Source: Oculina patagonica (Eukaryota). Taken from it: a DNA stretch of 64,000 nt. Shown one piece after another: positions 93 to 55,757 of this stretch (positions are counted from its first letter, which is position 1; each line of letters begins with the position of its first letter). The stretch is taken from positions 31,310,001 through 31,374,000 of the forward strand of contig NC_135759.1 in assembly GCF_052425735.1 (NCBI RefSeq). The letters run 5' to 3'. The notes below the pieces were generated by a model. That model did not search any database. It was given only the letters and a program-made list of their open reading frames with translations, and was not told the DNA's origin. The translations under genes were made by a program, and so were the position numbers.

Positions 93-677
93 CATAACAC
101 GAGGCCTCCCGAATATTTTCTACCATAGCATTTACTTCCGAAAACGACTGTGAAGAGACCACATGATCAGCGTCAGGATCACTGGCGATAACATTCAGCT
201 CATTTGTGTTTATTCTTGGACCAATTCCTATAACAAAGATGCTAACTCCCTCACGCCGAAGCACCTTAGAAGGCTCGATGACGGAGGCCGTCCCTTTGCC
301 CGCTCTTCCGTCAGTAAGAAGAACAAGCACTCTCGGAACACCCAATTCTATAGGTCTGACACCGTTATCAGGGTTATCAAACAGGTTTGTATGGGCCTCC
401 AAGAGGGCTAAGTCAGTGCGTGTACCACCACCCGCTTCGTATGGTATCGCTCCAATTGCATTAAGGACGTCTTGCTTCTTGACATAAGTGTTAAAACTAA
501 ACACTATCTTTGAGACATGGTGGTATATGATGAGAGCCACTCGAGTGCCATGAGGATATCCAATGTTGAAATATTCGCAAACCCTTATGACGAACTGGAG
601 TCCAAGTTGAAAGTTTTTTGCCTTGACGCTCATAGAAGAATCCAATACGAAGACCAGGTCGATTGGATTTTGACAAT
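93..677 (-). other. VWA domain exon of gene A
   Basis: DLVFVLDSSMS (MIDAS DxSxS), GGTRT, VLVLLTDG, IFVIGIG. Symmetric phase-1 exon. Confidence 0.95.
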
Positions 678-3557
678 CTGTGGGAACATGGAAGGTGGTA
701 AGTGAGCCTTATTTTAGCCAACTGCTCGGACTGACTTATATTCACTATAAATTGTACAACGTCTTCTAAGAATCGACGAGCCGGAGGAACACTGAGTTGC
801 AGAGCAGTTTGTCTCAAGAAGTTATAGTTGCATGTGCAATGTGCTGAAAGTATACGCTGTTTCTAAATGTCGCACATGTCAGTTGCGACTGCTATCAAAA
901 TTTAATGTTAAATATAATTCATTACCAAGACAGCATGTGATTGGTAAAGATCCAGGACATCCTGCTGCAGAATATTCACCCTTACAGCTTGTCACCAATT
1001 TACACCTTCCTTTTCTTTTGCCAACTAAACAGCTTGGACCTTTCCCTTCTGACGGACATGGAAGTCCAAGTACCTGTTAATAACACGATTAACATACACA
1101 ATGCAGACTTGGATTAAAGATTGTGCTGATGCAAAATATATAACCGTTTTGCAGTTTATTTCGTATTTTATACTTTTGGTATACAAGTCGATAATGCTGA
1201 TATTGGGTGGCGGCACTGATAAATTTTTCAAGTTTCAGTGGCAATGGTCATGAAAAAATGGTAGCTATCTTAATGTTCCTATCTTTGCCCATTTTGTACC
1301 ACTGAGATACAAAAAATTACCACAAATTCTTGTTTTTAAGGAAAAAGAATCATTCGTGAATGTCTTAAAAAAGAAACGGTTAATTTTACCTCAAGCGTAT
1401 GTCGCCAGTATTGGAACAATTTTTCGATCCCAGCTGCACCTTGCTGAATATTGACAGATAATTGCGCGAAGCCGTATTCAGTTCCATTGCAGAAGTTCCC
1501 TAAGTTCCCAGTGGGCGAGCTGCTGTTGTCAGCTGAGCTATATCCATTCGTCCATAACCAAGCGGCAACCTTAAATCCCACGGAAGGCAACGCCACTCTC
1601 TCCGGCTGGCCTGTAAAGTGGATTATATAGGAATACTTTGTCCAAAAAGACGAACGAAAAAATTGCAAAAAGTTATCGTGGTGTCAAAAAAAAAACGCAC
1701 AGCTATAAGCCTTTTTATTGGGTTGCTGTGCGAAAGCTAGACCAATGAAAGACGAAAAATGGAGGGGTGTGTCGGTTGCTAACAATGCAGGATATGGTAG
1801 TAACATTTCGGCGAAAAGGCAAAATATTAAATAAAAGGTAACAAAGTTAGACAGACTGTTCTTAATGGTTCTATCAAGTATGCCAAACAGAGACAGGTGT
1901 CAAATAAAATCTCTTAACATTGATTTGAAGCGACGAGGAATGGACATGGTCGAAAAACAATCAGACCACGTTTAGACCGATTAGTATAGAATTATTACTG
2001 CTTACTGTTCGAAAATCCTTCTTTTCAATCGCAAATGATGTTTTATGATTCAGTTGATGAATATTTCATCGATACTTTTAGGTTTTAAAATTTAAAAGAT
2101 GCAGCCATACTCAGACCAAAAACGACACGCCTGAACAAGGTTATGCCTTTCATTGTTCTGTTTCAACCAGACAAAAAAAGATATTTAGATGGATACTTAC
2201 GGATAATTTTGCTATTGACCGAAGATTTTGCAAGACGGTACATGTGTTTTCCAACCAGAGGCAGAAATCCCCGACTGATGTATTTGCGTGCATCAGTCTT
2301 TTTAGTATTTCCCAAGTTTTCCTTTCCTATATATTCCTGTCCGTTAGAGCTCTCCTCAGAAACATTCATTCCAGTTGTTTGGTATAAGATCTGTGTGAAG
2401 ACAGAATGTGTAAGTTGTCAATTTATATGTGGTAAAAAGTAATTATCAAAGTTCAACATTATGCTTAAGTGTGCCACACGGCCTCAAACAGAGTATGACA
2501 CCACATAAACTAAATGTAACATTAGTTAACGTGGAGCATGAACCAAGCCATGCTTGTTTCTCAGAATAAAGAATAGACCTTTAAACAGAAAGGAAACTGT
2601 AATGTAAATATACGGGAACTTTGCATAGGTATTTTCGAAACCTTGCATATTTGTTTCACGACATGCAGTGGTTGATACTTGATAATGTTCATTATAAACA
2701 ATAGGAACTTATAAGGAAAAAAAGGCAACCAAAATAAACTAATAAACAGCTGAGTTCTTTTAATTAATGTAATATGGACAAATTTGGAAACGTCATGTTC
2801 TCAGCTTCATCGTGACATGTCTTTTGGAAAAACCAAAGTTATGTCTGCGCAGAAAGCAGCTATTAGATTCCATTTAAACTCACTTGGGCTGTAAATGCTG
2901 CTATTTCTTGTCTGCTCGTGATCCCAGCCTCACTCAGTGCTTGCATGTAAAATGGATATAATGCCCTTGTCCTTGTTGTATCCCCAACCATCTTTAGATA
3001 AGATTCCAGAGAAACATTGATGTTTTGCGGGATGTTGGGAACTATTGTGCTATCCAAAATACAGCAAACAGTGTTTGGGTCCGTGAGGGTTGAATTTCTT
3101 AAGGTGGCCCCTGGGCAGTCTCTAGCCTCCATGTAGTAACCACGGAAATATGGAGAGTACTTTGAGTAACACTTTAGGCAGTTCGCCTTTTCTGAAGCGA
3201 AAAAGAAGAAAACAATTTCGAGTAGCGCTTCACCTTTTATTGGCAACAACAGCACGCATTCCTAATTTCCATTTGGCTCATCGACCCGACATAAGTTTTT
3301 TGCGGAATTTAGTTTGTAAATGGCATAGTCGTCGAGAATATTGAAAATTAAAATGTTTCTTACTGTCTAGCGAACCATCGCCTAAGCATCATCTTCTCGT
3401 TTCCTTTTGCGTTTTATTATTATGTCAACCGTTTTGTGCCAGTTTTCGTCCTGTTTGTCAAATTTGAATATACCTATCATAAAACGTTAGAAATATGTCT
3501 CTAGTGCTTACCTTGCAAAAGGAACAGTACAATGAAAAGAATGGTTCTCGTCGCCAT
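93..3557 (-). CDS. Gene A (5' part; continues off the left edge): signal peptide, Cys module, GH19-like pseudo-chitinase, Cys module, VWA; tandem paralog of gene B
   Basis: Exons 3512-3557 (MATRTILFIVLFLLQ), 2884-3191, 2201-2390, 1390-1610, 926-1073, 93-677. All have GT-AG boundaries with matching phases. Exon sizes 46/308/190/221/148/585 nt match gene B (46/308/190/221/148/582). Confidence 0.9.
1390..3191 (-). other. GH19 (lysozyme-like fold) chitinase/endolysin-like domain of gene A, catalytic Glu replaced
   Basis: The spliced translation MQALSEAGITSRQEIAAFTAQ-ILYQTTGMNVSEE..GQEYIGKENLGN...DARKYISRGFLPLVG..MY...QPERVALP..GFKVAAWLW aligns by eye with the bacterial/phage GH19 pattern GIT..R.AAFLAQ.GHES..E...Y.GR.DLGN..DG..Y.GRG.IQLTG..NY...P.LVA.P...SAAWFW. 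Confidence 0.85.
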
Positions 3558-10849: not shown

Positions 10850-11266
10850 CTATATTGAAACACATAGGGCATTAATAAAAAAATTCATCTGCATAGACAT
10901 GCCATGGGAATGTAACGGAACTTGTTGATTTTTGTCTTGCTTCAAGTTTAGGTCGAGCTCAATCAAATTTCTATCCATAGGTGGCAGAGCTTGGCAGCAA
11001 GTATGATTATTAATCGGGCGTGGCCGATTTAAGGTTTACCCTTTGGTCGTCCTAGAGCGTAGTCTCCTGGCGCGGCCAAAAAGACGGGGATAGCTCAGGG
11101 TTGCTACAAAACCGCTACGGGTGACGCATACCGCAATGGTTTTCATTTTAGTTTTGACAGGAAATCGTTGCAGGCACACTTGGTCGACTTTTGGGTTAAT
11201 GTGTAATCAGGTTGTGTTTTTTTGCTTCGGCGGAAGGACAGAGAAAAAAGCTTACGGGGCAAAGTA

Positions 11267-36678: not shown

Positions 36679-39600
36679 TCAAGCGTTTACATTTGATTCG
36701 TTGGTTTCTTCTTGTAAGGGTTCTATCGCTGTATTAAGTTTTCCCTTGTTGTTCTGTTTCGGGCTTTTGTTTGTGACTCTTTGGTGCTTCCTCTTTTTAT
36801 TGACTGGAATCGTGACGGGAGGCAATTTAACTTTTGCAGACCCTTGGCTGGGTTCCCTGGAAAGCCAAGCTGGCGATGGGCATCGCGGCTCACTGTTAGT
36901 GCCATTAGGTTTGACGACTGCTTCTTCAGCCGAGTAGTGGTGACCGTTCTCTTCAGATCGGAGACTGGGATTAGCAGTAACACCATGCAACCGGCTGTTA
37001 GTGGTGTCATCTGAGAGCGACATCATGTTCACATCCTTAAAAATATATTAAAAAAATAATGATAAACAATCAGACGGCTAGCCTATCGACCATTAATGTA
37101 CCCCAAACAAACCGATCACACAGAACGCGCTACTTTCAACGTCTACTCATTGCCGCAATAATTAAACCTTTTCTGAGTGACCATAATACAAATGTAGGGA
37201 CATCATCGCATAACAAGGAAAACTAAAAATGTCCTTACTGGACGATTTTGCAAGTTTTGTGCCAAATTAAAACCTTCTGTTAAAGGGGCAGTGTCACGAA
37301 TGAAGTCTTCTAAGTTCTTGTGTAAACAATGCTAGAATTATGAACATGCACTCGCGGATCAACAAAATAACCTTTGAAGAACTAAGGAATAAGGCATAAA
37401 ACCATTCTCCAAGAAGTGAAAAACAGTTATCAATGGTTCTTAAGTAATTTTCTTCCAAGTAAAACTGTCAAACTTGATGTTTTCAAGTTTCTATAGGCCA
37501 TTTCTTTTCCACCAGCCCGTAACCACACCACTGTTTAACCATTTTAATGACTTGTTAAGTTAAACGTTTAAGCAAGGTCAGGCCACCATAATTGGATTTG
37601 AAGTTAATACCAACACCTTCATTGGAGTTTAAAGTAGCACTAACTATAGTGACACTGCCCCTTTAAACAGAAAATTAACAAATATCGAACATAATTACCG
37701 ATATTGTAGCTCCATGGGATGTTGGAGCAGCAGCATTAGAAGAAGGAGTAAGTGACGAAGGTGAGAAGAAGGTTGTTCGACGGCTGGACCAGATTTCTTT
37801 CTTTCGCTGCATTGCCTTCCGTACCTTAACAAAAGAAGACAGAGTAAGAAAAGTATCCCGTATAACACCTGGGAATTGTTTGAAGTACGAAATCATTTGT
37901 CTATTCCGCGTAATTCTCCCAACAGTTCTTTCATGTGTCTTAAGCCGCCTTCACACGACAGCCAGTTATGGCCAACTCGAGTTGGAAAACTCAAGTTGGT
38001 GTGTGTTAACGACGCAACAACGTAAAACAAGTTGGCCAACTGTTGGCGACAAAAAGAACTTGTCTCTATTCTTACCAACAGTTTGCCAACTGTTGTTGTG
38101 TCGTTTACACACACCAACTTGACTTTGCCAACATGAGTTTGCCAACATGAGTTTGCCAACTTTAGTTTGTCGTTTGAATGCCACTTTAAAGTTCTGTGTA
38201 ATTCCATATTGCTTTTTGCACGTTTTCTGTATCTTTAATACAAAAGTTAAAAAAATGTAAATTAAGTTATCTAGGATACTGACAAAGAACATCAAAATTC
38301 AAGAACAAAGGTCGCATTATCTTACCTCTGAGTTAAGTAAACAGTGAAATATGAAAATGAAGAATCCTTGCAAGGAGTTGAAAATGGCAAAAAGGTACTG
38401 AAACGCGATGGTGTTACTGTCCAGTGCCAAAATACCAAACAGCCACGTAATGCCGAGTAATGGAAAGAGAACGACTGCTGACTTGACTCCAGATCTGATG
38501 ATTTGAAATTAGAAGTAATCAGGTTTATTAGAATGTGGGCGGAGCGTTTCAAGGAGCCTCTAAACAGACCATCCCCAGATGACCTACCAGCAGCCAAAAC
38601 AGTACGAAAACCAAAATGGCTTTCGATCAGAAATGCAAGTAGGTCATTAAGGAATGGGAAGACAATGTGTTCAGATAGCAGGGAATGCAAGCAGCCATGT
38701 ACAAGAAAAACGAAGAATTTTTGACATTTTATAAGAAATTTAATAATGGCATACTTTGCGTGCCTTAAAAAAATCATACCTATCCTACTTACTTGACAAG
38801 GTCAAACTTTGTTGAATGAGAGACTCCATTTGTTTGTATCTTAATGATCTCTCTGATGACCATGACAATGATTACTGTATTAACCTTCAAGACAAAGTGA
38901 TCAAATAATTAAACAGTTTGCCATTTCAGGCACCAGATGCTGGAATTGTAGGCATAATAGTGTCCAGTAATGAGCTCGCACGAGTCCTGGCATGGGGCTC
39001 TGAGTAGCGCTTTTGGGAAGCAAACTAGGACTATAAACGTGTACCAGCAAAATTTTAAGGTCAACTTGACTGAAAAGTCGGCGGTTAACTGGGAGGGACT
39101 CAGAGCAGACTATATTGTGGGGGACTTTCAATTCCTACTCGCTTCATAATACAGCATTGAATAATTTCCGGTAGTGCCACTTTTGTTCGAATGTAGACTC
39201 ACTTGTTCGCTCAGAACATACTTGGAAAACAGAAGTGGATCAGTGATCAGCAGATGATGAGTACCTCAGCAGGAAGTTTTGATGAACACGGAACGTTAAG
39301 CTCTCAATGAAAACTTAAATTAACATTGTAGTTGTAAAGGAATGCCCACACAACCGCTTGGTATTCTTGGTCAGTATATTTCTACTCACCAGGATTATCG
39401 CCAATGCCGGTCCTACAAAAGCATAAATAACTCCGTTTGCCACTGACAGCCAGCAGCTAGGAACAATAAGACGTTCTAAGTTATTTGAATAAGAGATGAC
39501 TAATGGAGAATTTTCTTAATTTAAAAAAATGAGAATAAACGAGAACAAGATTGCTTTGCCCTTATCAAAAATGAAAGATTTGTTTCATCTTATCCGGTTG

Positions 39601-42600
39601 GACACACTGAATGCAGTTACTGGTGTAAACCGGTGTCGACCGGCTGAACCCTTTATAAAAGTTTTGTTGGGACAAATTTGTCAGGAACAGTAAAAAAAAA
39701 AAAAAAAATGATTGCCTTCCTTCGAATGAGTGCCTTCCGTTTGCGTGAGAGTAATTCGTGTTTTATACCTGGAGTCTGTGCCGTAACCATCATGCGCAGT
39801 ACTGGCAGCAATAAGAACAACAATTCCAGGCAAACCTACGAAGCAACATCAAAACATTCACACGGTTTAAAACCTTTGTTGGTAATTAATAACCATTTAT
39901 AAATATAGATAACAGTATAGAATTGTGCGAGGCACATTGACGTTTGACCAGCAACCTGAGACGTATCTGTATAAAAACCACAAGTGCATTATTATAAACC
40001 TGATTATTAATGATCATAGCAATAAATTATTGGTCTTACCATATGCGCATAATCCATACATACGCAGTTGTTCTTTGCTGTTTTCGAAAACAGTGATGAC
40101 CATAAGGTAGAGATACACGCCTTCAACTAGCATCCACGCAAATGACACCAACAGAAAATAGTGAAGTAACACCGCTACCAGCGTGCAGGCAACCTATAAG
40201 AGGAAATTGAATAGATCGAATTTTGAAATCGTAAGTTAATTAAATCATCTATCTGAATCACTAATACGAACAAGAAGATGACGAAGAAGAAGAAAAATAA
40301 TACCTTATGCAAAAACAGCAGCAGCAGAATCAAAAACAACAACAATAGCACTAACAACAACAATAACAGCAAGAACGACGACGATAACAGCAACGAGAAC
40401 AACAACAAGAACAACGTTGACAATAAACAAGGGCAGCCGGGACACCAACAACTAACACTGACAAGAACAACAACATGAAGAAGGCAAACCTCTCCTAACC
40501 TCTAAGGATAGAAGTGACACTTACTGATAGCATGTCGTAAACAAAGAATAACGGAAACCCATAAACATGGTTAGTTTACGGTTAGGATTAGGGATACAAG
40601 TTAGCGATCGGTTGTTTGGTTAGAGGTTAGTGTTTTTGGTGGTTAGGATGAGCTTTTGGAAGAGTGTTTCGGACTGTTCTGGGATGTTCCGGTGTTCCCG
40701 GTTTTACTACATGCCCTTGTTGATGATATGTTGGTCTTAAAAGTACTTTTTGTCGATTAACAAACCTCATTACTAGTTGCTTCAATTCCTGCCAGGAAAA
40801 TTACTTGAAAGATCCCGATAGACAGCGCCAGGTTTAGGTGAATAAGGTTTCTCTCTGAACGCACACCGCTGTGGAGTATAAATGAATATATCCCAAATTA
40901 TATTAAGCGAACCAGCACGTCTGTTACAGTTTTTATCTTTTAAAGGTTCTTCTGAATTTTGCATTATCTGAAAAACTCAGAAAACATTATTTACGAGTTC
41001 CAGATAGGATTTTGAACACACGAACCCTCCGTAATCCCTGTAATCTAGTCGGATGCCCTACCTTTGAGCTACTGGAGACTCAATGGTGTGCAAGGGTGAA
41101 ATTGATGTGGGTCTGGACTAAAACCGCATCACGCAGTCACATAGTCAAATCAGGACAGGCACATATGACCCATTGTTGCATCACGCAGTTACTTTAAAGC
41201 AAACCTGAGATGCAACCATCCAACCACCAAGTAAGTCTTTCTGAAGAAAGACTATATTTCTTCAGAAAGACTCACTTCTGAATTAAAAGCTTAAAAAATT
41301 GACCATCTAAAATGATAAGGCGATCAAATAACTAAAAAAAGTCGAACTTACGACAAGCAGGAGATGATGACGACTGTAAGGGCGACTCCAACGAGTGACA
41401 ATCCACAGCCGACGTAAGTGATGATCTCTAAAGCTACAGCATGGGACTCATGCACCTAAGAAAGGAACGTCCGTCTTTTTATATCATAAATAATGATGGG
41501 GTAGAGCAGTTACTCAAACAACATTTGCGCGCACGGAAGTTTTTTTTGCCCACGGAGACTCCCGTGTTAAAGGAGCGAGAACGCTCGTGGCAAAATTTAA
41601 AATGAAACCTCAAAAAGGAGCCCACTCTGAGCGTGGCTCAATCTCTATTTGACCCCTTAGACATTCTAAAATAGACACACAATTAAAAGCTACAGTGACT
41701 AAAATGGCAATAAAGACATTGTCGTCAAATGCTTATACATATATAAAAAATTTTGAAGCTTTCATGTGAGATTCTCAATCATCAGCACGATACATCGGCG
41801 GTCTTTAGTTTGTTGCGTGCAATTAAGAGATACCTTGCTGACTACAAACATTTGCGTTCTGTCCTGAACACCCGAAGTTAGACCAAAATCTACAGTTAAC
41901 ACCATTAAAAAAGGGACCACGAGCCGGCATCCTCGCCCCTTTCGCAAGGAAGTTCCCGAAAGTAGAGAATTACACCATCACATACGAATATTGTCCAGTT
42001 AGGATAAGTACAAGTAACTATATGACCTTATTTCATTACCTCCAGGTCTGAATCTGACGTGACCTGCATCAGCACTGCAAAGTTTGTGAGATGATCGCAT
42101 TTGCAGACGGAATGTGTTTCATTTGAAGCAGAAGCATCCACCTCACATCCTTTCGTTGACCACAATCCACTGCCGTTAACACTCCTAAAAATATCGCGAG
42201 AGTAAATTTTTAGTGTGGTTTAATCTTTGTGACGTGTAAACTCACGTTTACTTTTATCCAATTTTGTGTCAGTGTTAAAGGTAAGTAATTCACCGTGATT
42301 GAAATTCTCAGTAGTTTAAAGCAAAAATATGCTAATCCAGGATAAGCTTGAATTTTGATTACAGTTTTACGACTGACTTTTCAGTGAGATTTTCTGTTTA
42401 TATGAAATTTCTGTCCTCCAATTTTGACGTTGTCTGGTCACAAACTCTAAGAAGCAGTGGCAATGAAAAACGCTTTTGCACAAAAGAAGTTAATGAACTG
42501 TTAAAGCTGGGTTTTTGTTGATTGGCCTTCAAGCAACCCGCCCCACGTGATTAAGTTTTATTTATTTTAATCAGTATTGACAAATTTGCAGAATATCTTC

Positions 42601-45600
42601 GGCAAACTTCCGGCTATCTTCGAACGTCATCGCAATTTTTTTCCAGTAAAAAACTTCGCGATAACTTTGGAATTCTCTTAAGGCTAATTTCCTTGCTGCC
42701 GCGCTGCGGTTATCTTTGCTTGTTTGCTGATTAAATCCAGATCACACTCACCCTCCAGTGAAGTCCCACCACACACAGACCGGCACCAGCGTTGCATTTG
42801 ATTTGTACTGAAAAAGTCAACATATTATAATTCTTCTCACTGGTTGTTTGTCTCACTGACAACAAACACAACTGAAACTGCAGTTCTAGTTATAATAAAC
42901 AAACCAATAATCCGTCTTCACTAAGCTTGGGCACTGTAAATTTTTTTTGTAACTGACCCTTGCTTCTTCCGTTTTGTGCTGGCGTCGAGTTCTCTCGCCG
43001 TTCTCACCGCGCGCTCATCGATCGAAAAAACACGAAAAAATAGAGGGCTGTGGACGGTCTACTGAAAGCGCAAACTTTTGGTTCATTGGGTAAAAAATAG
43101 TATCATAAAGACTATAACTCAAGAGAAACAATTTTTGTTGGAGAGAAAAAGTTATCTTTCATACTTGTATTCTTGATTCATGTAAAAAAAATAAATTCCA
43201 TAGCATACACATCTTCATTTGTCAATCCATAGTGGCACACTTACCTTCACGTGTTGAAGGGTGACACGAACATCCAGCTCTTGACTATGAGCTGCCGGCG
43301 GGATCACAAGACTTCCAATGACGCGGCTGTTAAGCTCGTAATGTGCATTTTCGCTTTCTTTTTCACTGAAAAAGCAAAATAATCCGAAATATGTTTTATT
43401 CTGGAAATACTTATACAATACTAGATCGCTAGAAAAACTTCACGAAATTAAATTGCGTATAATATGTTTAAATTAAAGGCCTGTATTACTTCCTTGAGGC
43501 CACACACGCATGGTGAGTAAGCGAAAATACATAAGACGATTGAACACTACACGAACTTTTAACAGTCAGGAGGACGAAGGAAAATGCAAATAACTGTTTT
43601 GTGAAGTATTTGCTCACATACTCTGCTTGTTGGAATCCATTGGATAACAACTATACTTACTTTGCGACCTCTGCTGGAGTCGATGGCAACATTTTATGCA
43701 AACTCTTGTAAATGACACTAAAAGCCTTTGTTTTGTTCCGAGGTCCTGTGAGAAAAATGTTACCCATTAACCTCCGCAGTTCCAGATACACAGCTCAGTG
43801 AAAGAGCGCGTGAATGTGAAATAATTCAGCAACCAATGCAAATGTTAAATCATCAAAATTAATAACTCGTTGCAATATTCATATAATAAAAATTGTTCCT
43901 GGTTACTATTCGACACTCACCAGCCATTTTCAAAGTAAGGAAATCGTTAATCCCTTGCCAGTTTTTGTCCATGTTGGACATTGAAAATCTGTAGTTATCA
44001 GACAACACTGATGCCTGCAAAGCTAATGCACAGAAGAGACATTCAGTGTTACTAGTGTTATAATCTACAATTCATGACAATTATAGATACTAAAACTTAT
44101 TTCCATTTGTTGACTTTACTAAGTGTGTCCGCTGCTAGCCACATCGACAAAACTTTGAGATTAATATCAAGAGTAGTCGAAATTGTTATTCTCCTTACAT
44201 ATTAAGAGAGATTACCTGGCAGTCTGGGGATTAGATAATAAACATGTAATTAACTTGGTTACATCGTTTTCATCAAAAACCAAGTTGAAAGAATTAACAT
44301 CACACAACAAAAGTAGGAGTATTGTGCAGCGAATATAAGAATATTCTAACAATAAAGCTTTTGGGTGAAAAAGGCCCATGAGAAAATAAAATGTTCTCAC
44401 CAATGTTGTCCTCCGATGAGCTAACTGGAGATGTTTCATTTGACCATTTGCCAGCCAACCCTTTTCCAAATAACTCTGTGATCTCAGCTATCTTAATCGC
44501 TAACGTTTTGTTAGACCGACGCCACTGCTCTTTATTTTTGTCCTCCATAACGTCATTTATAGCCTCTGTGCTTTCCTTGCATTTAAAAAAAACAAAAAAC
44601 AAAAAAAAAGAAACAAGGAGTCAAATGTTAAATAAAGCAACAAAAACAAAAACAACATACACTTTCCTTTTCGGCCTTCCCCAAAGATTGTCTTTCTCTC
44701 ATCTCAAGAGGCAGAAGGAAAAAAAAAACCGAAAGGCCCATTTACACGGCAGAAAATTTGTGGCACGGCTCTGATAAAATTGGTACGCGTACCAAAAAAA
44801 TAGCACTGATATCCTGTTTACACGTCCATTTTTCTACCGTGCAAAACTGCGTTACTGATAATGTTTTGGTGCGAGTAAAAGGCTCAACACCTTGTCCAGC
44901 GTACGCAATTCTGCCTTAGTACACATGCCGCTATTTCGTTTAAACGTCAAATACGAGTCGCGCATCTTTTCGGATTTTTCCCAGAAGACTAGAAAAGGGT
45001 GAATGTATATGGTTCTTGTTCAATTGGCAGTAGTGATGGCTTGTACCTCCCCTATTAACGACGACGATTATTTTCTTTACTGTTTTATTCTCCTCGCCTT
45101 ATTTGGATCAACTCCTTACATCATGCTCTTCCAAGGCAGAATTTAAGCTTTCGACTCTGGACACTAAGAGTCGAAAGCTAAAATTCTGCTTGGAAGAGCA
45201 TGATGTAAGGAGTTGATAGAAATATGCGAGAATAAAATAATAATACAAACAAATAATCGTCGTCGTTAATAGGGGAGCTACAAGCCATCACTGCTGCCAT
45301 TTACTGCTGCCATTTGAACAATAATCATATACCTTCACCCTTTTCTAGTCTTCTGGGAACAAGGCGAAAAGATGCGCGACTCGTATGTGACGTTTAAATG
45401 AATAAGCGGCATGCGCATTAAGGCAGAATCGCGTACGCTGGCCAAGGTTTTGAGCCCTTTACCCGCACCAAAACATTATTTAACGCAGTTTAGCACGGTA
45501 GAAAAAAGTACGTGTAAACAGGGTATCAGTGCCATTTTTTGGTACGGGTGCCAATTTTATCCGGGCCGTGCCAAACTTTTTTTGCCGTGTAATTGGGGCT

Positions 45601-48600
45601 CATAATATGTCCCAGCTTCCTACAGCATTGAGAGGAAGGTGCGGTGGTCTAATGGTGGACTCCGGATAGAGCGGTTCGGGCCTTCTCTGACAGTGCCTCT
45701 CTCCATCCAGGTGTATAAATCGGTACCGGGGGATCAAGTTCTGGGTAGCCTTTCGATTAAATAGTATCCCAACCAGAGGGGAGTACAGATACTTCTAGTC
45801 GATTCATGGTACAAAAGCCAGAGTTTAGCACCGGCCGTATGAGCCACGAGGCTCGACCTCTCCTACTTGGACGATTGTCTGCGTACTGAGGTGATGTTAA
45901 AGAAATATTTCACAATACAAGTTACCTTTGTGACTTGTACAATTTGCCGAAGCGAAGAAGGGGACTGGTCTGAAGGTATTGATTTCAAACTTTTCATCAT
46001 CGTGTCCATTGACTGCTTGAAGGTTTTGAGCTAAATACAAAGGTCAATATAGAGTTACGTTACAATGCCTCACACCTGAACGTACACATCTAATTTGGAC
46101 AAAAACAAGTTCGCAGCAATGTGAAATAAAGGTAGAGGTAAAACGAAACACATTCTTTAGTATCTTACGCTACATTTATGCATCTTACATCATAGAAAGC
46201 AGATTTGTAATCAGAATTAACCGCACCCTCCAACAGATTATTTCATGTTTTTAAGATCGATTGAGCATAGAAACAAAGCACAATAGGTTCGTATTGACTA
46301 ACCTATCTATTATCGCAAACAGAATGAAACTGAGTCCAGCCACAGGGAATAAACAAGATCCCCAACAATTCGTAAAAATAAACAGTGGAATGTTATTTTC
46401 TTCGCCAAAGGTCATGGAAGGAACGTAATGACTTCCGTGCGTTTTTATTAGACTGTACAACACTCTGTCGTCCTGCTTCCTTACTTCTTCGTCCCTCCTT
46501 AGTAAAGGTTGCCTTAACCAACACTGAGAACTAGGTGCTTGGTTTTAAATAATAAGGCTATTGCATTTTATGCAAGTTATACCCAAATTAACATTTAACA
46601 AAACAATTCTTTGTAAAACTCTTGAACAAATTTTAGTTTACCTTTTCGTCCAGACTCTCTGGACTTTCACAAGCCTCTGCTTGACATTTCACATTTTGTA
46701 AACCTTGCTCACTTCCGCTGCAATTGAGAAGGCTCAGCTCTGTGTAGGAAAAAGAAAATATTTGAAAATGACGTACATACCGGGGTTAGATTGCCTTTTT
46801 GGTTTTTGGCTAAATATACAATTATTTTTCGTGTAACATTTTATAGAGAGGATGAGAGTGGTTTATTGTTATTATAAACATTGAAATTACAATATACGTA
46901 AAAAAAAAACAAGATATAAATTCACGTTTGAAAGAAAACCTAGAAAAATTGACCATATAATTGTAAAATGGTGCAAATCGCGATATATTTTAACAGAGAT
47001 GTTATTAAATAGAAAAGACAAAATGCTAATGCCATAAGCCGTAGTCACAACGTTTGCAGTCTTCTGCTTTTTATGATTGTATGATAGGAATGGACGGGGA
47101 CTTGAAAATAACAGAACTTGTTTAGTGGTGATTGGTGATTTTTTTTTTTTAATTCAGTACACTGTAATGCGAATACCTTTTTCCTTCATACCTTTTCTCT
47201 CCATAACGAGATGTCTTGATGAAATGGGCTGCTGCTTCTTAAGTGTGGGGAATTTCGCTCCGACACACATAAAATCACCGAGAGTATTCTCCTTGTGTAA
47301 TACTTCCATGTAATACAGGTTGCCTTCATTGAGGTATATCTTTTTTGATGTTTGATTAGCGGAACTAAGAGAAGAAACTTTATTTACTAGAAATTAATGC
47401 AAGTTCATTCAGTGATAAAATTTTCTTATATTGGCGGGAAAAAGGAGAGTGGTCGCCGAATGACAAAATTGTCACAAGTAAAAGAAATTAGCATAAACCG
47501 TGAATTATCTAATTTAGCGATAGGCCGCTAAGTGATCAGTTTATCGCTTGTACTTTCTACAGTAGTTTGTCCAATAACATTTACACCCCTCTGTAACAGA
47601 CCTGGTGACACATGATTTTCCACCAGGTTTTCAACACAAAATCGACCAGGGAAGTAAAAAATCCACCAGGTTGATTACTTTTTTCCATCAGGGAGGGTGA
47701 TGATATATTAAATCTAACCAATTATTGATGCAAACTGTGAGCTAGTATGCAATCAACTTAGCGGGGTTATCGTGCACAGTTTTCCGCACCGATGTCGTCT
47801 AAGGGCTGTAGATGACACCGTCTTTTTTTTTTCGCATTGTACGCAAACAACTGAAGTAACATACTCTTTGTATCCTGCTCATACACGGAGAAAAGTGGCG
47901 AAGGAGAAACGGCAAACGGGCCGTTTTGAGATCCCCGTGAGTTCTTTGTATCGAACAGTGAATTACCGCCACTAGATCCGCAATGGGTCAAATTTAGCAA
48001 ATAATTGTCGCAATGAGCCAAGGAGTCGCCCTACTATTGACATGGTTAGTTCACCCTTGGACTAGACTTGCCTACAAGTCGTGCTCAGCAAGCGCAAAGA
48101 GAGAAGAGCACACAGAGCGCGAAAACGAGAAACGAGAAGCGAACGACTTGTAAAAAGTCAACCCTTGGGCTTGAAGCAGTCGCCGGGATTATATTCCTAA
48201 AATCCTCTGAAATTCTCGCATGCACGTTTTTGTCCATCAGGGTATTAAACAAGGCACGCAATGCACGCAGAAGCGATGACGAACAGAAGAACAAATTCCG
48301 CCAATAACCTTATGATATAAGGTGATGGACTGACATCATCGCCTGAAAATGATTACACTTCCTTTTGATGCATGTTACTTTTCCAGTTCTTAGCAGGACT
48401 GCAGGCAGGATTTGAAACGACGGTTCTGAAAGATGCAAACGACGTAACGATGGATCTGAAAGATGCAATCGTGTGAACGCCGAAGATGTAAGCTACTCGG
48501 GAACTCTTCCGCTCACTTCGCTCGCGTAATCCTTTTCGAGAGCCTATTCACAGGCTAGCTACTCGGGTTCCAGGAGACATGCCTCCCCGGGAAATTTTGA

Positions 48601-50015
48601 AAAAAAATAGACAGGCTGAAATCACATTTCGTGCGTTTTAAGAGGAGTTTCGTATGCAAATAGGCACCTAAACTGAAGTAAACTTAATAAACCACGATTA
48701 TTTCTAGACCTTTTCAGTTAAAATCAAAGCGTCTTATTTTTGGAAGGGAAACTGGACGCGCTTCACCAGGCAATCAACCTTACACTCGACGAATTACACC
48801 TGCCAAAACATACATTAACGACTAAAAATTCCTAAACTGCGCGTCGAAGGTCTTTAAGAAAGTCTAGGTAAGCGTTAATTCAGCCAGATATTCGATAGTT
48901 TTTCAAAGAAATTGGGAGATGTTTTCGTGGGATTATAATTATTTTCTCGACTCAATCTGAATACAAGTTAAATTACTTTTCCAGAAGGTAAATGGCATAA
49001 TATTTATTATCAAAAGAGCCTAGCATCAAGAGACAGAATCAGCGCCTCTCCACTCGCGAGTGCACCAAGATATATTCGCGCGTGCCCCAAGGTGAGCCTG
49101 CTCGCAGGCTAAGGACAGATCCAGAGGCTGCCTAGCACGGGCGCACCTAAATTTAAACTGTGTCATCCGTTTACTTTCAAAGTTGAAAAATGTTTAATAT
49201 GCTGGCCCTTATTCGTTGATCCATTTTTAGAAGGTCAAAGCATAAAAAAATCTAAATAAGAGAACCGTTTGCTTATATTTTTTACATGTCAAATAAATTA
49301 TCTCTTTTTTGGATGTAGCGAGCAACGAAAAATATGTGTTAATTAATGACTGCTGTCCCCCAGCCCCGGGCTCCAGCCGTAGGCATCAATAGTTTCATGT
49401 AGGTGAAAGCTACACAAAGTTCTATTTAGACAGTACTTACAATTTGAGGCAGCTTAATTAAAATTTACCGTAATACGCCACTTGAATGATCTTGAATGTA
49501 CTTGAATAACTGACGTGTATTTTACATCACATTGTGCCGGCGGGCTGCAAAGTTAAAAATGATATTTTATACATCAAGCGCCTCTCAAACTGCTCGAGGC
49601 TGCTTAATCGAAGGGAAAAAGCCGCTTAATACTCACCAAGAATTATGTGGGTCAAGCTGATTATCCTCTGCGTAGTTATTCGATAAAACGCTGTAAAAAG
49701 CCGGGTCAAAAATACTTCCACACATTTATCTTGGGCCGCGCGCGCTGTTCAAATCGCTCAGCTCTGAATCATTCACAAGCTCGTAATACATACAGTATAA
49801 AAGGAAACATATCTGTTTTGTCTCTTCAGTGGCGTGCATGACAGCAGAACAAGCGACGAAAACAATAGTAAAAGTTAAAAATTACTTTTTGCTATATTTA
49901 CATCGAGTTATTCCTCGCGAAGCGAGGCCGAAGGCCGAGCGTAGCGGGGTGTATAATTTTGTCCCTCAAAGGGATCAGGCGGGATGAAATCTCGTGTGGA
50001 GTTTACGGTCATATA

Positions 50016-50054
<39 letters not shown>

Positions 50055-50181
50055 GAGCTTGGTGTGTGGCGGAAATGACGTCACACGGCCGCCGCGCGCT
50101 GGTGGCCTAATGGTAAGGCGTCGAACTTGAAATCAGATCTTCGGAACTGAGGTCGGGGGTTCGAATCCGGCTAGGGTACGT

Positions 50182-50212
<31 letters not shown>

Positions 50213-51965
50213 TGGGTTCGAATTCTGAGCCTTTCATTTTTATCGTTTTTCTTTTCGGATTAAAATAACATTGATCTCCACATAATACTCCCTCAACGCC
50301 TATTCAGGCTATAAATCTTTCATCGCCATCAGGGGCGCGCGGGCGGAGGCTTCGAATCCTCCTGCCGTTCGTTCTTCTTCTTTTTTTTTAATGCCATCAA
50401 ATAAATGTCCAAAATGCGACTATCCAATAATTTGTCGATGATTTTGAAAATAGCCTGCGCTTCCCAACGCTTTATACCTCTTTACGAACCAGAAAAAGCC
50501 ACCATCTTCAAAGCGGAGTAGACCCTGGGAACGAGGGTGTCGCGGCCATGCCCGTTGAAATTTCTAACAAATATATCTTTCTGCCTACTGTGGAAAATTG
50601 AATATGTACAATTCAATAAATGTTCAACTTCAAATAATCCACTCCTTATTTATAACACCCCCCCCCCCCCCCTCCCCAACCCAGAGCTTCGCGAGGCCCT
50701 GCGAGTCACGTATTACTAGTTAAATTATATTTTTGCTGCGCGTCGTTTTTTTTTTTGTTTATTTAAGCCAGCAGAAAGATTTCGGTTGATTTTTCCTGGC
50801 CAGGTAAACAAAATTTTTCACCGGGGAGAAAAAAAATCGACCAGGGATTTTTCAGATAATCACCAGGTAGCAGGGAGGTCAAATTTCCACCAGGGAGAGC
50901 AAAATAACCCACCAGGTCGGGTTCCACCAGGTCTGTTACAGAGGGGTGTACATTTTGATCATTTTTTAGTCCAAGCATTGCTAATTCGTGCTAATATTTC
51001 CCCAAAGAGTGCGCATACTGCATCAGAAGTACTTCTGACTGCACGTAAATTTGTGCACCGGCGGTACAGGCGGTTGTTTATTCATTTGAATGTGAAACAA
51101 ATATCGGAGAGGAAGGGTAGCTTGTGAAGCCTGGTTTTCACTAGCGACGCAAGCACATGTGCAAGGAAAACAGCTCTTATTTCACCATGAAAACGGCTTC
51201 GAGTCAAGCAAAAGCACAGGCGCATTGCATTTTGATGCTTGTGCTTGCGGCATGCACAAGCACAAGGATCAAATTTTGTCCTTTTTGCGTGATTGCGCTG
51301 GTGCTGGCGTCGATAGGGAAAACCAGGCTTTACAGGTGTGCAGTTACTTCGGGAGTCGCGCGAAAAAACAGCTAGGATGTAACAGGCGTTGTGATTGCCA
51401 ACTGTCTGGGCAAGATTTCCTGTTATTCGTACAGGTATTAGAAAAGAAAAACACAGGCAAAAGAGCTGCAAAGAAAAGCATGATAAACGTGTTATTAACT
51501 CTCAAAAGCTCGGAACCATACTGGAAGAATATTACCTAAGTTATAATTAGACTTACTTGTCCCAGACATGCTGTCTGGTATGTTGGCGCTGATCAACAAT
51601 GAGGCGTTTCCCGGCGGGTAGTTCATTGTCGCTCATCCATAGCTGGCAGTCGTTATCGCAGGAAGTCTGGAAGGTATAATCGCCTGTCTCTGGAGCTCTG
51701 AAGAAAGACCTTAACCGCTGACCGTAATAATCACCGCTGGATGGTTTGTAAAGGCAAAAGGTGTCGATGAACTGCGTATTAGAAGGAGCACAGGGGTAGG
51801 AACTGCTGGATATTAAATCATCCACTTGGTCTCCTGGCACGTTTGTCCAAAGTTCACGGTACACTGCCAAATAAAAAGAATTGCTCAGACGGCTGATTAC
51901 ATGAACCCACAGGCATTGTGCTTTAAGATTTTGTTGTGCATTAATAAAGGATCTGATGATGATGG

Positions 51966-52011
<46 letters not shown>

Positions 52012-55000
52012 AATGATGATGAAATGTGGGAATAAAACCTCCGTTCTTATGACTTTTACTCTGATAAAGATCAAAGATACGTCATTTCGCTCCCTAGATG
52101 GCGTAGACAGAATACGAGCCGCAGGCGAGGGCCTTAGAAAAAAGTGAAAAAGAGGTTTTATGCCAATGATGGATTTGATATGGGATAAAGATATGGGAGC
52201 AAGGTTTCGACAACTTCTTTTATTTGCGGGCGCACAAAAAATTGAGATATACTCTGATAAATAATAGCATTTTTTACGAGAGCTGTTAAACGTGGGCCGT
52301 TTATTGGTTGTCAAAGTTATACATTATAGCAATACCTTTTTTAACTGGGCAATTCATTTCCCACGAGTGAAGGAACTGTTTACTTTGTGGTTCAAACATA
52401 AGTCCGGTTGATAATCCTGTGCGATGGCGTGTTCTATCGTTGGCGCAATCATAATAAGCCCTGCAGTCGTCTGGGTCAGCGTGCAAACCAGAAGATTTGC
52501 CAACACAAAAGTCTGAAAGATAAAAGCAGAGAAGATACAAAATAACTGGCATTCACAGCAATGAAAGTGGGATAACACTTGGATTGCTTTAATTTGTTGA
52601 TTAACATGAAGCACTATAGTGGTAAATTTATGTAGCTTAGAGTTACTAACAGTACATTATGTACATTATGTCAATATGTTCGTTTCCCGCGTTGCTGTCT
52701 CTCTGTGAATGCCATGCAGGCCTCGAGAAATAGTCTCTCGTGAAAATTACGAGCCTTGCCTACAATTATCGCGTGTGCGAAGTCTATGCTATGGACAAGC
52801 GCGTTTGCATGCTGTGCAACCTTGGAATTGTTGTCTCCAACACGAACCGCCCTTCTATGTTCTTTTAATCTTGTTTCCAAGGCTTTATCTGTTTGACCAT
52901 AGTACACGAAATTGCAGTCCACACAGCCTTGATATAAACAGATATTATGCTGCTAAGCGACCAAACTTTATTGTTTCAGCACTCGGTCGCTTTTGAGAGC
53001 TCATTCGCGCAAACGAGTGTTTCAACTGTATGCCAGTTTTCAGACAGGGCGAACCTTTCAACATATAAATAAAGTATCATTCAAAGGAAATATCGAGATT
53101 CTAAGGGACGGACCATTATTTTTTTAGAAGGAGGGGATTAATTTTTTTAAGAATTTGCAAACAATTTTTCCGGCTGCAACTTCCTGCAGACAATGTTTTT
53201 TTATGTCTGCAAACAATTTATTTGGATTTTTTTTTTTTTTGCTTTTTGCTTTTTGCTTTTGCAGCAATATTTTTTCAGGTTTTTTGATTCCCCCTCCCCT
53301 CCAAAACAATTATGGGACTAAAGGAGTTTCCAAGGAATCAGTCATTAAAGCCTAGCAATACGGACACTAGAATACAAAACATGTGTACCGGATATATTGT
53401 ATTCTGGGGTACTTGTTCAGTTGTATTGGTGCGTATTGTTTTTCAGTGCTCCATCGCTTTGAATTTTTACTGCACTATTTTACTTCACCTCGGAAACACA
53501 CAAAAGGGACCCACAATTACTGAATTGTATCCAGAGCGGGATACATATGAATTCTACGGCACAAGCATGAAAGAAAAAAGCGCGCGTAAATTTTACCATG
53601 CTCTGGTTTGGTTGGTAGCTATTTTTATACGAGCCTAAAGAGTAGAAAACATCTAGCCAACACAAACAAATAAATATTGTTCTGGAGAAATGACTAGATG
53701 TTTCTACGACATGATACAACGAGAAATGTAAAAGTTCATAAAGTATATAATAAAGTTAGATTTTGTTTTTACTACATAATATGACCAGAAAGTTCTCGTT
53801 TTTGCTTGAAATCGCTTTTAGCGGTTTTGAAATTGTGAAAATATTACAATATTGTAAACTGATTCGATACTGATGACTGGCGAGACACTGAATTATGACA
53901 GTTATTAAAACCCTTATATTTATTCTACGTTTCAATATTCGACCCCGGCAGATTAGAAAAGGTCTGCTCTGCCAGATTATTAAAGATAAATAACAAACGA
54001 ACTGATGGCGGTAAAACAAAGCTTATAGAGGCGACGTAATTATTGTTTACTAAAGTTTCTTATTCGCGAATTTTGTGCAAACAGGATTAAGAAATTCATC
54101 GACGATTTCGTGATCTGCATAAAAGATTTTGTATGCACTCACCTTTGAATTAAGCCTCAAAGAAATGATTTAATTACACCCTGTTCGCGGAAATGAACGT
54201 CTTAGCGATAAATCTAGCTAAATATAATAGACTGACGTGTATCCCCTTCAGCTATTAGCACGTCACAATCAATTTCTCCTACAAGATGGTTTTGTTTTCT
54301 TAGAAAGGGAATAAATTAGAACCTTAATTGCTGTCAGATGGCCTTGCGTAAACATGCCTTAGAGTACTTACAAGTACATTATGTATGGCGGAAACAAATC
54401 GTTCAATTGAAGTTAAAGCTCATGTTATTTTTTTTCAGAATTTCACGCTAAAAATAAAGTTTGCGTATTGCGAAATATTGAACCTGATCAATGTCAGCGG
54501 GGAGCAATACTCTGGGTAAATATTTTCATCAAGAAAAACAAGAAGTTAACTCAGGTGGACAGCTGTATACATGATCTGACACTGCGATGTATATGATATT
54601 CATTTTAAAAGCTAAATGATGAACGCAAACTTTTTAATTTCCTAATTCTTGTTTGACTTTAGTGTTGTTTCCTTTAATTTTAAATTTTTAAGAAATAGGC
54701 TGTATTTTACTGCGAAAGAAAAGAGGAAAAATATAATGTATACGAAACTGAAAATACAGTCTCAACACCAACGAATGTCAAATTTGTAGCCATTAAAAAT
54801 ACAATTCGAAAACGAAAATAAAGATACCTAAAAAATACAAAGTAAAACTGCGGAAAGATAGTGTACGAGTAGCGATCTAACTCGCTTTTCTGGTAAAAAG
54901 AAATGCATTTGAAGTCTAATTTTCTGCCGTTGTTTGATTGATATGCTCTCCTGCCAAAAAGGTTTAATCAAGTGCATGTCATAAACACTATATAGGGGTA

Positions 55001-55757
55001 TTTTAGCTTTGGTTAATAGACTGAAAATAAATGTCAGAATCTCAGTAGTCAATACATGTTTTCCCTGTCACGCCACGAAATGACTGTGAGTAGAATTTCC
55101 GCAGACGGATAACATTATTATTTCTATCAAAAACCGCACGGTATGGACAGTTTCAACTGTTACATACAATAAAGCCCGAACATTGATTAAACCCGTTCTT
55201 GGACCAGTTTAGACACCTTCATCAGTCTAAGTTTGGTTTGTGATGTTTGATGTTTTCCTTGTTTAATAAGATTAGCGTCAAAAGTCTCAAATATGCCAGC
55301 GACGAGCAAATTATGGATTTAATTCTGCTGTGTACAGTTTAAAAAGAACAAATCCAATAGGAATTCTTCACTTCGATTCCCCGTTCTGTGGTAACGCCTT
55401 TATAATCATTCTGATCTTTTCAAAATCCAATATAAGACGACTCTGCCCTCCACAAGTAAATTATTGAATAGCAAAATAACTAAAGCTACGCAAAATAAAC
55501 GTAGCAAACAAAACATCCCGCAGATACATGTCCCGTATAGGTCTACTTACTTTTGTCGTAGTAATCCTTGGTAGCAGAAGAAAACACAAACTGTCGAAAA
55601 AAAGAAAGGCCATAGCCGTCTATTTCTCAAAGCCAACAGTAAAGCAAATATCGAACTTAATTTCTCTAAGCGTGACAACCCTAGAACAGGCTAAGAATTT
55701 CAACAATATTCAAGACCGTACCTCAATAAAAATAATGCAAATAGCAACAACCTTCAT
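36679..55757 (-). CDS. Gene C: adhesion GPCR with CBM14 (chitin-binding type 2) and PA14 domains, GAIN/GPS and 7TM (about 952 aa)
   Basis: 22 phase-consistent exons: 55722-55757, 55551-55590, 52336-52512, 51557-51863, 47192-47364, 46642-46739, 45926-46030, 44401-44575, 43921-44022, 43661-43745, 43245-43365, 42752-42807, 42040-42184, 41352-41455, 40766-40868, 40040-40193, 39769-39835, 39390-39456, 38793-38884, 38326-38494, 37699-37824, 36679-37035. Motifs: signal [78 protein letters not shown]. Confidence 0.92.
37284..37662. mobile_element. Kolobok-like MITE
   Basis: TIR AGGGGCAGTGTCAC/GTGACACTGCCCCT with a TTAA TSD. Confidence 0.85.
37941..38188. mobile_element. Harbinger-like MITE; second copy at 62966-63202
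   Basis: GCCTTCACACGACA terminus and internal TTGCCAAC repeats. Close inverted homolog near 63 kb. Confidence 0.75.
40275..40480 (+). repeat. AAC-rich low-complexity intronic tract
   Basis: Degenerate (AAC)n/(AAG)n. Confidence 0.85.
40950..41280 (-). mobile_element. Decayed tRNA-derived SINE, same family as 28333-28480
   Basis: Shares AACTCAGAAAA...GAGTT.CAGAT...CTAGTCGGA.GC...TGAGCTACT with the 28.3-kb copy. Confidence 0.65.
42040..42807 (-). other. GPS autoproteolysis motif and Stachel of gene C
   Basis: [37 protein letters not shown], the canonical H-L/T cleavage site. Confidence 0.95.
44734..45600. mobile_element. Palindromic MITE (about 865 bp, diverged arms)
   Basis: GGCCCATTTACACGGCA...TGCCGTGTAATTGGGGCT. 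The arms pair up to a central AGCTTTCGACTC/GAGTCGAAAGCT at about 45146-45179. Confidence 0.85.
45630..45860 (+). mobile_element. Decayed tRNA-headed SINE
   Basis: A-box-like TGGTCTAATGG and core CAGTGCCTCTCTCCA.CCAGGTGTATAAAT.GGTACCGG. Confidence 0.6.
47584..50948. mobile_element. 3.4-kb non-autonomous DNA transposon in the PA14 intron of gene C
   Basis: Perfect TIR CACCCCTCTGTAACAGACCTGGTG, TA on both flanks, subterminal CACCAGG repeats, no transposase ORF. Confidence 0.9.
49908..50720 (+). mobile_element. Helentron/HINE-like element with a tRNA-like cassette, nested in the 47584-50948 element
   Basis: Sub-terminal IR CCTCGCGAAGC/GCTTCGCGAGG, (TA)n, CTAGT 3' end. A box TGGCCTAATGG at 50103, B box GGTTCGAATCC at 50158, then poly-T. 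Confidence 0.6.
51128..51330. mobile_element. Short MITE
   Basis: TIR AAGCCTGGTTTTC.CTA.CGACGC at both ends. Confidence 0.8.
51955..52021 (+). repeat. (GAT)n microsatellite, intronic
   Basis: About 22 GAT-type units; the source of the poly-I/M/D pseudo-ORFs. Confidence 0.95.
52336..52512 (-). other. CBM14/peritrophin-A chitin-binding domain exon of gene C
   Basis: [22 protein letters not shown]...GLMFEP...NCP matches the CBM14 pattern C..G..ADP.DC..YY.C....GL.F. Four of six Cys are retained. Confidence 0.85.
52660..53070 (-). mobile_element. Penelope-like GIY-YIG endonuclease fragment
   Basis: [21 protein letters not shown]...NSKVAQHA...HSIDF...RLFLEA. Confidence 0.85.

Follow-up and report, generated by a model that had tools for sequence, protein, structure and literature searches.

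Little is known about the cell-surface recognition of bacteria, fungi, and symbionts by corals. Hydrolase folds that lack a catalytic residue are retained as peptidoglycan or chitin binders in the non-amidase peptidoglycan recognition proteins (PGRPs) and the GH18 chi-lectins, and we know of no animal G protein-coupled receptor (GPCR) that reads either polymer directly through an enzyme-derived head. Catalysis by GH19 enzymes relies on a set of two Glu residues and a Ser/Thr, and plant GH19 proteins that lack the acid Glu serve as lectins or have regulatory roles (PMC8547705). Here we analyze a 64,000-nucleotide window of the intron-rich, 529-Mb genome of Oculina patagonica (assembly GCF_052425735.1, contig NC_135759.1, positions 31,310,001 to 31,374,000 of the forward strand), in which three neighboring genes, A, B, and C, are all co-oriented on the minus strand, as a first-pass annotation of the window had described. 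The products of A and B comprise a signal peptide, a Cys-knot, a GH19-like domain, a Cys mini-domain, a VWA domain, a beta-rich domain of about 150 amino acids, and a class-B seven-transmembrane (7TM) region, whereas C carries CBM14 and PA14 domains on an adhesion GPCR. The reading that we favor, with moderate confidence, is that these are two different receptor types and old neighbors: A/B would be a class-B, adhesion-like receptor that lacks a GAIN domain and has captured its ectodomain, and C an ordinary adhesion GPCR.

The GH19-like domain of B was recognized through its relatives. A search of 1.8 billion protein representatives with the first exon of the domain found 42 proteins, made up of exon-sized, prokaryote-style calls from coral contigs and of longer proteins with the same layout. 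When a profile of 12 relatives of this exon was compared with the PDB, it matched GH19 phage endolysins (9ms7, E = 2.5e-24; 9hnv, 1e-23; 4ok7, 6.8e-17) and, more weakly, GH19 chitinases (5h7t, 5.8e-12; 2cjl, 5e-08). The spliced coral domains align with the relatives over their whole length, from the Cys-knot across the GH19-like core, and for three relatives the alignment extends through the C-terminal Cys mini-domain. By way of these relatives, the coral domain is established at the sequence level as a homolog of the GH19 catalytic domain, nearest to the phage GH19 endolysins. An exon-by-exon scan of the whole genome with Pfam GH19 gave no match, but the controls were equally silent. Four proteins, two from the rotifer Brachionus calyciflorus (CAF0734370.1, here P0024, and CAF1046181.1, here P0039) and two metagenomic (P0015 and P0041), share the layout of the coral ectodomain and have no Pfam 7TM match; in three of the four, collinearity with the coral domain extends through the C-terminal Cys mini-domain, and a VWA domain is present in three. 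The wider family of Cys-knot and GH19 endolysin-like proteins comprises rotifer members with VWA, one with PLAC8, and a metagenomic protein combining VanY and GH19 (P0028, JGI).

The general-acid Glu is invariant among the 12 relatives, and the base Glu is nearly so. Coral exon 2 ends with AAFTAQ at a GTGAGT donor and exon 3 opens with ILYQT after an AG, so the junction reads AQ|ILYQTSG and places a Gln at the general-acid position. The acid Glu is replaced in every cnidarian copy examined: the position holds Gln in A, B, and L014, a scaffold from TARA coral metagenomes, Gly in L021, and Thr in L022. All five copies retain the base Glu (SEE/TEE). The column aligned with the Thr of the motif IQLTG holds Ile or Val in the window genes (Ile in B), Leu in L022, and Arg in L021; by our own reading of the alignment, this column would correspond to the Ser/Thr that holds the catalytic water. 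Because a binding rather than a cutting role is reasonable for a GH19-like domain without its acid catalyst, our best reading is that the domain is non-hydrolytic and putatively glycan-binding. The proposal that two genes of the locus combine a pseudo-GH19 domain with VWA is thus borne out, the former by the PDB profile of the relatives and the replacement of the acid Glu by Gln, the latter by Pfam (A, 88-708, E = 5e-42; B, 25183-25989, E = 1e-41). The accompanying idea of a shared N-acetylglucosamine (GlcNAc)-polymer theme held in part. Both ectodomain types are real, but this GH19 branch has peptidoglycan-cutting endolysins, not chitinases, as its nearer kin, and "two GlcNAc-polymer binders" may therefore not mean the same ligand; the kinship of the GH19-like domain suggests peptidoglycan no less than chitin.

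Gene models, for which the window was extended at both ends, were built by hand from open frames, AG/GT sites common to paralogs or orthologs, RNA contigs, and collinear cross-species matches (Table 1). For B, we examined contigs of four public runs over positions 20001-26000 of the window. Three runs were RNA-like, with coverage confined to exons and with CT..AC joints (GT..AG on the minus strand) at 25284|24756, ~24281|23963, 23830|23393, 22451|21947, 21848|21411, and 21252|20188. The fourth covered the stretch evenly and contained none of these joints, and it was therefore taken to be DNA. The six joints place the VWA domain, the beta-rich domain, TM1, the loop exon, TM2, TM3, and the start of the TM4 exon on one message, so that B is spliced from the VWA exon to the TM4 exon and encodes these parts as a single chain. 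No joint skipping the loop exon was among those listed for the RNA-like contigs of this stretch. The other junctions of B were set at AG/GT sites common to A and by collinear matches to the TARA ortholog. For the signal peptide, we chose a short exon whose donor is strong in A as well as in B and which is matched in the TARA scaffold; a long frame at 32550-32337 was ruled out, since its donor is destroyed in A.

Downstream of the GH19-like domain, the VWA domain of B has an intact metal ion-dependent adhesion site pattern (DxSxS...T...D, here DSSGS, GGTRT, and TDG; A reads DSSMS). A beta-rich, Cys-containing domain of 158 amino acids follows, in the place where a GAIN domain would sit. It has 21 coral homologs at 56-80% identity and none more distant. 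A profile search of the PDB gave no match at E values up to 10, and Pfam gave noise-level matches on the 21 members (UPF0669, E = 0.06, in three of them). Language-model features hint at PPC, and we regard a PPC/C6orf120-like beta sandwich as a weak lead. No GAIN domain with a GPS was encountered before TM1 in A or B: Pfam GPS gave no match on any B exon at E values up to 1, and the pattern CxC-HL-T/S is not present in the 158-amino-acid domain. Between TM1 and TM2, a single 943-nucleotide exon inserts 314 Lys-, Glu-, and Ser-rich residues into intracellular loop 1. Near the end of this insert (~22560-22600), the short hydrophobic Cys-Pro-Cys segment KVMAVMCPCFTFLIL is conserved in A; it is too short for a membrane helix and may form a lipid-anchored patch. 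The 7TM region is of the 7tm_2 type (Pfam E = 2.5e-6 on the TM3 exon).

All coding blocks of B (30841 to 16347) are matched collinearly in A (3243 to about -6750) at 57-100% amino acid identity, and 14 splice junctions of B map to AG/GT pairs in A, with splice sites intact in both copies. The 7TM region of A, which had been predicted to lie beyond the window, was found in the sequence flanking the window start (L012), its 7TM exons being 81-97% identical to those of B. Judged by this collinearity, A and B are tandem copies. They differ by a synonymous divergence (dS) of 0.17-0.32, and their ratios of nonsynonymous to synonymous divergence (dN/dS) of 0.27 in the GH19 part, 0.30 in the beta domain, and 0.14 in TM2-TM7 indicate purifying selection on both. 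The first GH19-like exon occurs in exactly two copies in a whole-genome search. The TARA coral scaffolds have a single gene of this type, located where B lies, which makes a lineage-specific duplication the probable origin of A. An apparent disruption of the TM1 exon of A proved to be a mapping artifact, the acceptor of A lying 15 nucleotides downstream.

Gene C encodes, in order, a signal peptide, CBM14, PA14, a linker, GAIN, 7TM, and a tail. Its model is collinear on the TARA ortholog, where match ends coincide with exon ends and the same exons are found. The CBM14 domain scores 28.5 bits against a cut-off of 22.1 and is 78% identical in the TARA ortholog. It keeps four of the six canonical Cys residues, the absent pair being C4 and C5, which form one disulfide in canonical CBM14. 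The first half-exon of PA14 falls below threshold by itself (Pfam E = 0.27), and the spliced domain (residues 73-227) reaches E = 9e-29 with a hidden Markov model built from eight open reading frames of the same genome that exceed the Pfam PA14 cut-off. The combination of CBM14 and PA14 proposed for one gene of the cluster is therefore confirmed. A 56-nucleotide micro-exon carries PVCVWWDF (the CVWWDF strand), and the GPS exon reads GC...CKCDHL|TNFAVLM (Pfam GPS E = 4e-13), the motif ending 20 residues before TM1. Seven hydrophobic helices follow (Pfam 7tm_2, E = 3e-11). Its sequence features make C a canonical adhesion GPCR whose HL|T site is intact and whose head is unusual. That both B and C end in adhesion-type 7TMs, as first proposed, needs qualifying: both are of the 7tm_2 type and C is canonical, but B, without GPS and GAIN, is adhesion-like only.

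The first-pass annotation had the ectodomains assembled onto a common 7TM, and it looked to 7TM kinship, conserved linkage, and expression to decide whether B and C belong together. The first two lines diverge, the 7TMs being distant and the linkage conserved. The 7TM regions of B and C are 31% identical over TM2-TM7 (219 amino acids, E = 1e-39), and all five intron positions and phases coincide from TM2 to the TM5/loop-3 exon, B having one extra intron in TM7. The TM6-7 exon of C has at least 65 other genomic matches, at up to 64-80% identity, and A and B are not among them; the genomic matches of the corresponding B exon are A and one weak site only. Kinship was judged by this ranking of matches; one 55-amino-acid exon would not resolve a long branch in a tree. 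The ranking and the low identity together mean that B and C are not sisters in any recent sense, and they lend no support to the idea of a common 7TM. The A/B 7TM would be either a fast-evolving or an old side branch.

Linkage has been kept in two other cnidarian lineages. A C ortholog lies directly upstream of a B ortholog on the same strand in the TARA scaffolds L014-L020 (65-85% amino acid identity), and the same adjacency is found in L022, a contig of a much more distant cnidarian (40-55%). On L022, the GH19-like and VWA parts are still followed by the beta domain and then by the exons for TM2, TM3, and TM5 (CW). The fusion of GH19-like, VWA, and 7TM parts is therefore old, and the TARA scaffolds likewise preserve the architecture of B. 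The gene downstream of B is likewise conserved in the TARA scaffold, and general microsynteny could therefore explain the linkage of C to B.

Several points weigh against the reading of A/B as an intact receptor with a binding head and a neighbor of a different type. In the exon-by-exon Pfam search, GH19 was not called on the coral exons, the best E value being 0.21. Cleft motifs are altered in the window genes (GDG to ADA/TDA, RGRG to SRG, and NY to MY), so binding could be lost along with catalysis. The joins from the GH19-like exons to VWA lie outside the stretch examined for RNA, which ended at 26000, and are predicted from open frames, shared splice sites, and homology. The fold of the 158-amino-acid domain also escaped modeling, an AF2 model from the 21-sequence alignment having a mean confidence (pLDDT) of 33, which is unusable. 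For C, expression is suggested by word shares with RNA-like runs: X1 and X4 share words with both B and C at the bulk level, and splicing was read for B alone. Moreover, the assembly gives A and B one frameshift each in the loop exon. In B, the frame is closed after TM1 by one surplus G (position 23042). It is missing from the contigs of all four runs (three RNA-like, one DNA) and from A, the loop exon is open once it is omitted, and the exon is continuous in RNA contigs. This base stems either from an error in the assembly or from a frameshift allele that is private. In A, a two-nucleotide (CG) insertion at about L012:7104 (window -2896), seen in the assembly sequence only, is followed by a stop 25 codons later; other indels of A relative to B are in frame. 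Glycan binding, ligand identity, signaling, and cooperation of B with C are, finally, what we infer from these architectures.

Among the alternatives, the strongest, to which we give slightly less than an even chance, is that the adjacency is accidental or purely historical and the chitin theme a coincidence, with C one of very many coral adhesion GPCRs that bear varied heads and A/B an unrelated orphan receptor. The distance between the B and C 7TMs is consistent with this, as are the abundance of the parts of C in the genome, with at least 66 loci bearing C-like TM6-7 exons and at least 45 PA14 matches. Against it, about 66 loci in 529 Mb would, by our estimate, give a same-strand neighbor within 15 kb in only ~0.1-0.2% of cases, and the adjacency survives to 40-55% amino acid identity. 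We consider it unlikely, in turn, that B and C form a true two-receptor glycan-sensing unit derived from an ancient tandem duplication of one adhesion GPCR, in which a GH19-VWA gene would later have taken the place of the head and GAIN domain of B, and co-regulation or a common microbial or matrix polymer would have kept the two genes together. The co-orientation of the genes, the 4-6 kb between them, their adjacency in both the TARA corals and L022, the five coinciding introns, heads that both come from GlcNAc-polymer-binding families, and the presence of parts of both genes in runs X1 and X4 would all fit such a unit. However, at least 65 7TM relatives on other chromosomes stand closer to C than B does, the coral adhesion-GPCR clade as a whole probably has this intron pattern, the conserved downstream neighbor suggests that the linkage may be general microsynteny in corals, bulk RNA is uninformative on cell types, and the GH19 branch leads to peptidoglycan whereas CBM14 leads to chitin. 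Decay of A and/or B to pseudogenes, which would leave the locus without present function in this species, is suggested by the early stops that the two loop-exon frameshifts cause in the assembly and is improbable, given that the extra base of B is missing from the three RNA-like runs and the DNA run, that the remaining exons of both copies are open with all splice sites intact, that dN/dS is 0.14-0.30, and that B is transcribed and correctly spliced.

We therefore return to two different, long-adjacent receptor types. Under this reading, the A/B ectodomain would be a whole captured secreted protein (Cys-knot, GH19-like domain, Cys mini-domain, and VWA) of a kind still free in rotifers. The cnidarian GH19-like domain would have lost the acid Glu and the water-holding Ser/Thr while keeping the base Glu and, overall, the cleft-forming sequence, and the head would most likely bind a GlcNAc-containing polymer without cutting it. 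Peptidoglycan would be the first candidate because of the kinship with endolysins, and chitin oligomers the other. The VWA domain, with its metal site kept, could hold a protein partner. Since B has no GAIN/GPS, its activation cannot rely on a tethered agonist; its signal would pass by direct contact between ectodomain and 7TM or by clustering, and the 314-residue insert in loop 1 is a likely docking platform. C would belong to a large expansion of adhesion GPCRs in corals; its head combines CBM14 with PA14, its GAIN domain looks cleavable, and its Stachel is canonical.

Our searches of the literature on GH19 and GPCRs, on cnidarian and coral adhesion GPCRs, and on rotifer GH19 proteins found no description of GH19-like, VWA, or CBM14-PA14 heads on adhesion GPCRs, and as far as these searches reach, B/A would be a previously undescribed class-B receptor variant. 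A bolder proposal, which we hold to be doubtful, is that B is a GPCR-type pattern-recognition receptor in which a dead endolysin-like head reads bacterial peptidoglycan or chitin and signals through a 7TM without GAIN and with a giant loop 1, B and C together making up a conserved module of two receptors that would sense microbes, symbionts, or matrix. B is in any case a concrete, testable candidate, for which the rotifer relative supplies a natural Glu-bearing comparison, and it bears on how class-B receptors may be activated without a GAIN domain. The locus would record the grafting of a whole secreted protein onto a 7TM body; should the genes be independent, two unusual coral receptors have still been annotated.

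Table 1 Positions of the features of genes A, B, and C in the window (L012, sequence flanking the window start; L012:3250 corresponds to window position ~-6750).
Feature	Position	Strand	Remarks
Gene A, in-window part	93..3556	-	shared AG/GT junctions, collinear with B
Gene A, signal peptide exon	3556-3511	-	MATRTILFIVLFLLQ
Gene A, Cys-knot and GH19-like exons	3191-2884, 2390-2201, 1610-1390	-	
Gene A, Cys mini-domain exon	1073-926	-	
Gene A, VWA exon	677-93	-	
Gene A, off-window part	to ~L012:3250		10 further exons (beta domain, TM1, loop insert, TM2-TM7)
Gene B	16344..32363	-	16 exons, ~1274 amino acids without the extra base
Gene B, exons 1-4	32363-32318 (signal peptide), 30777-30470, 29723-29534, 28907-28687	-	
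Gene B, exons 5-9	26441-26294, 25865-25284, 24756-24281, 23963-23830, 23393-22451	-	
Gene B, exons 10-16	21947-21848, 21411-21252, 20188-20125, 19646-19580, 18992-18895, 16918-16792, 16505-16344	-	
B signal peptide	32363-32318	-	MATRTILFMVLFLLQ, short exon
B Cys-knot and GH19-like domain	28687..30777	-	three exons
B VWA domain	25284..25865	-	Pfam E = 1e-41
B beta-rich Cys-containing domain	24281..24756	-	158 amino acids
B TM1 exon	23830..23963	-	VYAGAAVATIGTTATVAAVVTLS
B loop-1 exon	22451..23393	-	single exon
B TM2-TM7 and C-terminal tail	16344..21947	-	seven exons
Gene C	36679..52552	-	18 exons, 907 amino acids, one open frame, one terminal stop
Gene C, exons 1-6	52552-52336, 51863-51557, 47364-47163, 46030-45926, 44575-44351, 44014-43867	-	
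Gene C, exons 7-12	43745-43661, 43365-43245, 42807-42752, 42184-42040, 41455-41352, 40868-40766	-	
Gene C, exons 13-18	40193-40040, 39835-39769, 39456-39390, 38884-38793, 38494-38326, 37035-36679	-	
C signal peptide and CBM14 (peritrophin-A type)	52336..52552	-	Pfam E = 1.7e-6
C PA14	47163..51863	-	two exons, 51863-51557 and 47364-47163
C GAIN end	42040..42807	-	micro-exon (42807-42752) and GPS exon
C 7TM region, TM1-TM7	38326..41455	-	seven exons

Other elements were noted within and between these genes. In B intron 5, on the plus strand (26785-28315), an open reading frame resembling reverse transcriptase (RVT_1, weak) is followed by one with GIY-YIG, a pairing that we take to be characteristic of Penelope-like retroelements. 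Another GIY-YIG fragment is found just upstream of the start codon of C (52674-52952, minus strand). Contig depth in the DNA run rises to ~52,000 at 20200-21200, with many loose ends, which points to a high-copy repeat in the intron between the TM3 and TM4 exons of B. A near-perfect inverted repeat at 17130-18430, whose arms are 88-100% alike at the protein-frame level, lies within the intron between the B exons at 18895 and 16918. In intron 1 of C, a long simple-sequence tract (51900-52080, minus strand), read as poly-Ile, poly-Ser, or poly-His by frame, inflates the open frame 51556-52323. Between B and A, Lys-rich open frames without a Pfam match (9713-10849, minus strand) resemble a stretch downstream of the B ortholog in the TARA scaffold L014 (19007-19875), and there is probably a small conserved gene here. 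Upstream of C, on the opposite strand, lies an amino acid transporter gene (61419-62770, plus strand; Aa_trans, E = 1e-34).

Compared with the adhesion GPCRs of class B2 (latrophilins/ADGRL and ADGRG), C shares the modular head, the GAIN domain with an HL|T GPS, the TNFAVLM Stachel, and the 7tm_2 region. The 7TM of B is homologous to that of C, with the same intron phases, but B differs from these receptors in having no GAIN/GPS, hence no tethered agonist, in its loop-1 insert, and in several conserved 7TM motifs, where HY has become NY, WMLVEG has lost its E, and TM5 has lost GP. The coral GH19-like domain resembles GH19 endolysins and chitinases by homology, and the plant Glu-less lectins (GH19ED groups CHIT 3 and CHIT 4; PMC8547705) in the replacement of the acid Glu. 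It differs from these proteins in that it is encoded by an animal, has phage endolysins rather than plant chitinases as its nearer kin, carries flanking Cys-knots, and is fused to VWA and a 7TM receptor. The two Brachionus proteins have the layout of the coral ectodomain, from signal peptide to VWA; P0024 can be aligned with the entire coral domain, and P0039 lacks part of the GH19-like core. Known here from sequence alone, they differ from the coral genes in keeping the acid Glu (P0024 also has the base Glu, which P0039 lacks), in having no Pfam 7TM match, and in having no introns at the coral positions. By analogy with the non-amidase PGRPs and the GH18 chi-lectins, the head of B may be a dead hydrolase kept as a putative binder, and B differs from both in its GH19 fold and in the GPCR output module to which this head is joined.

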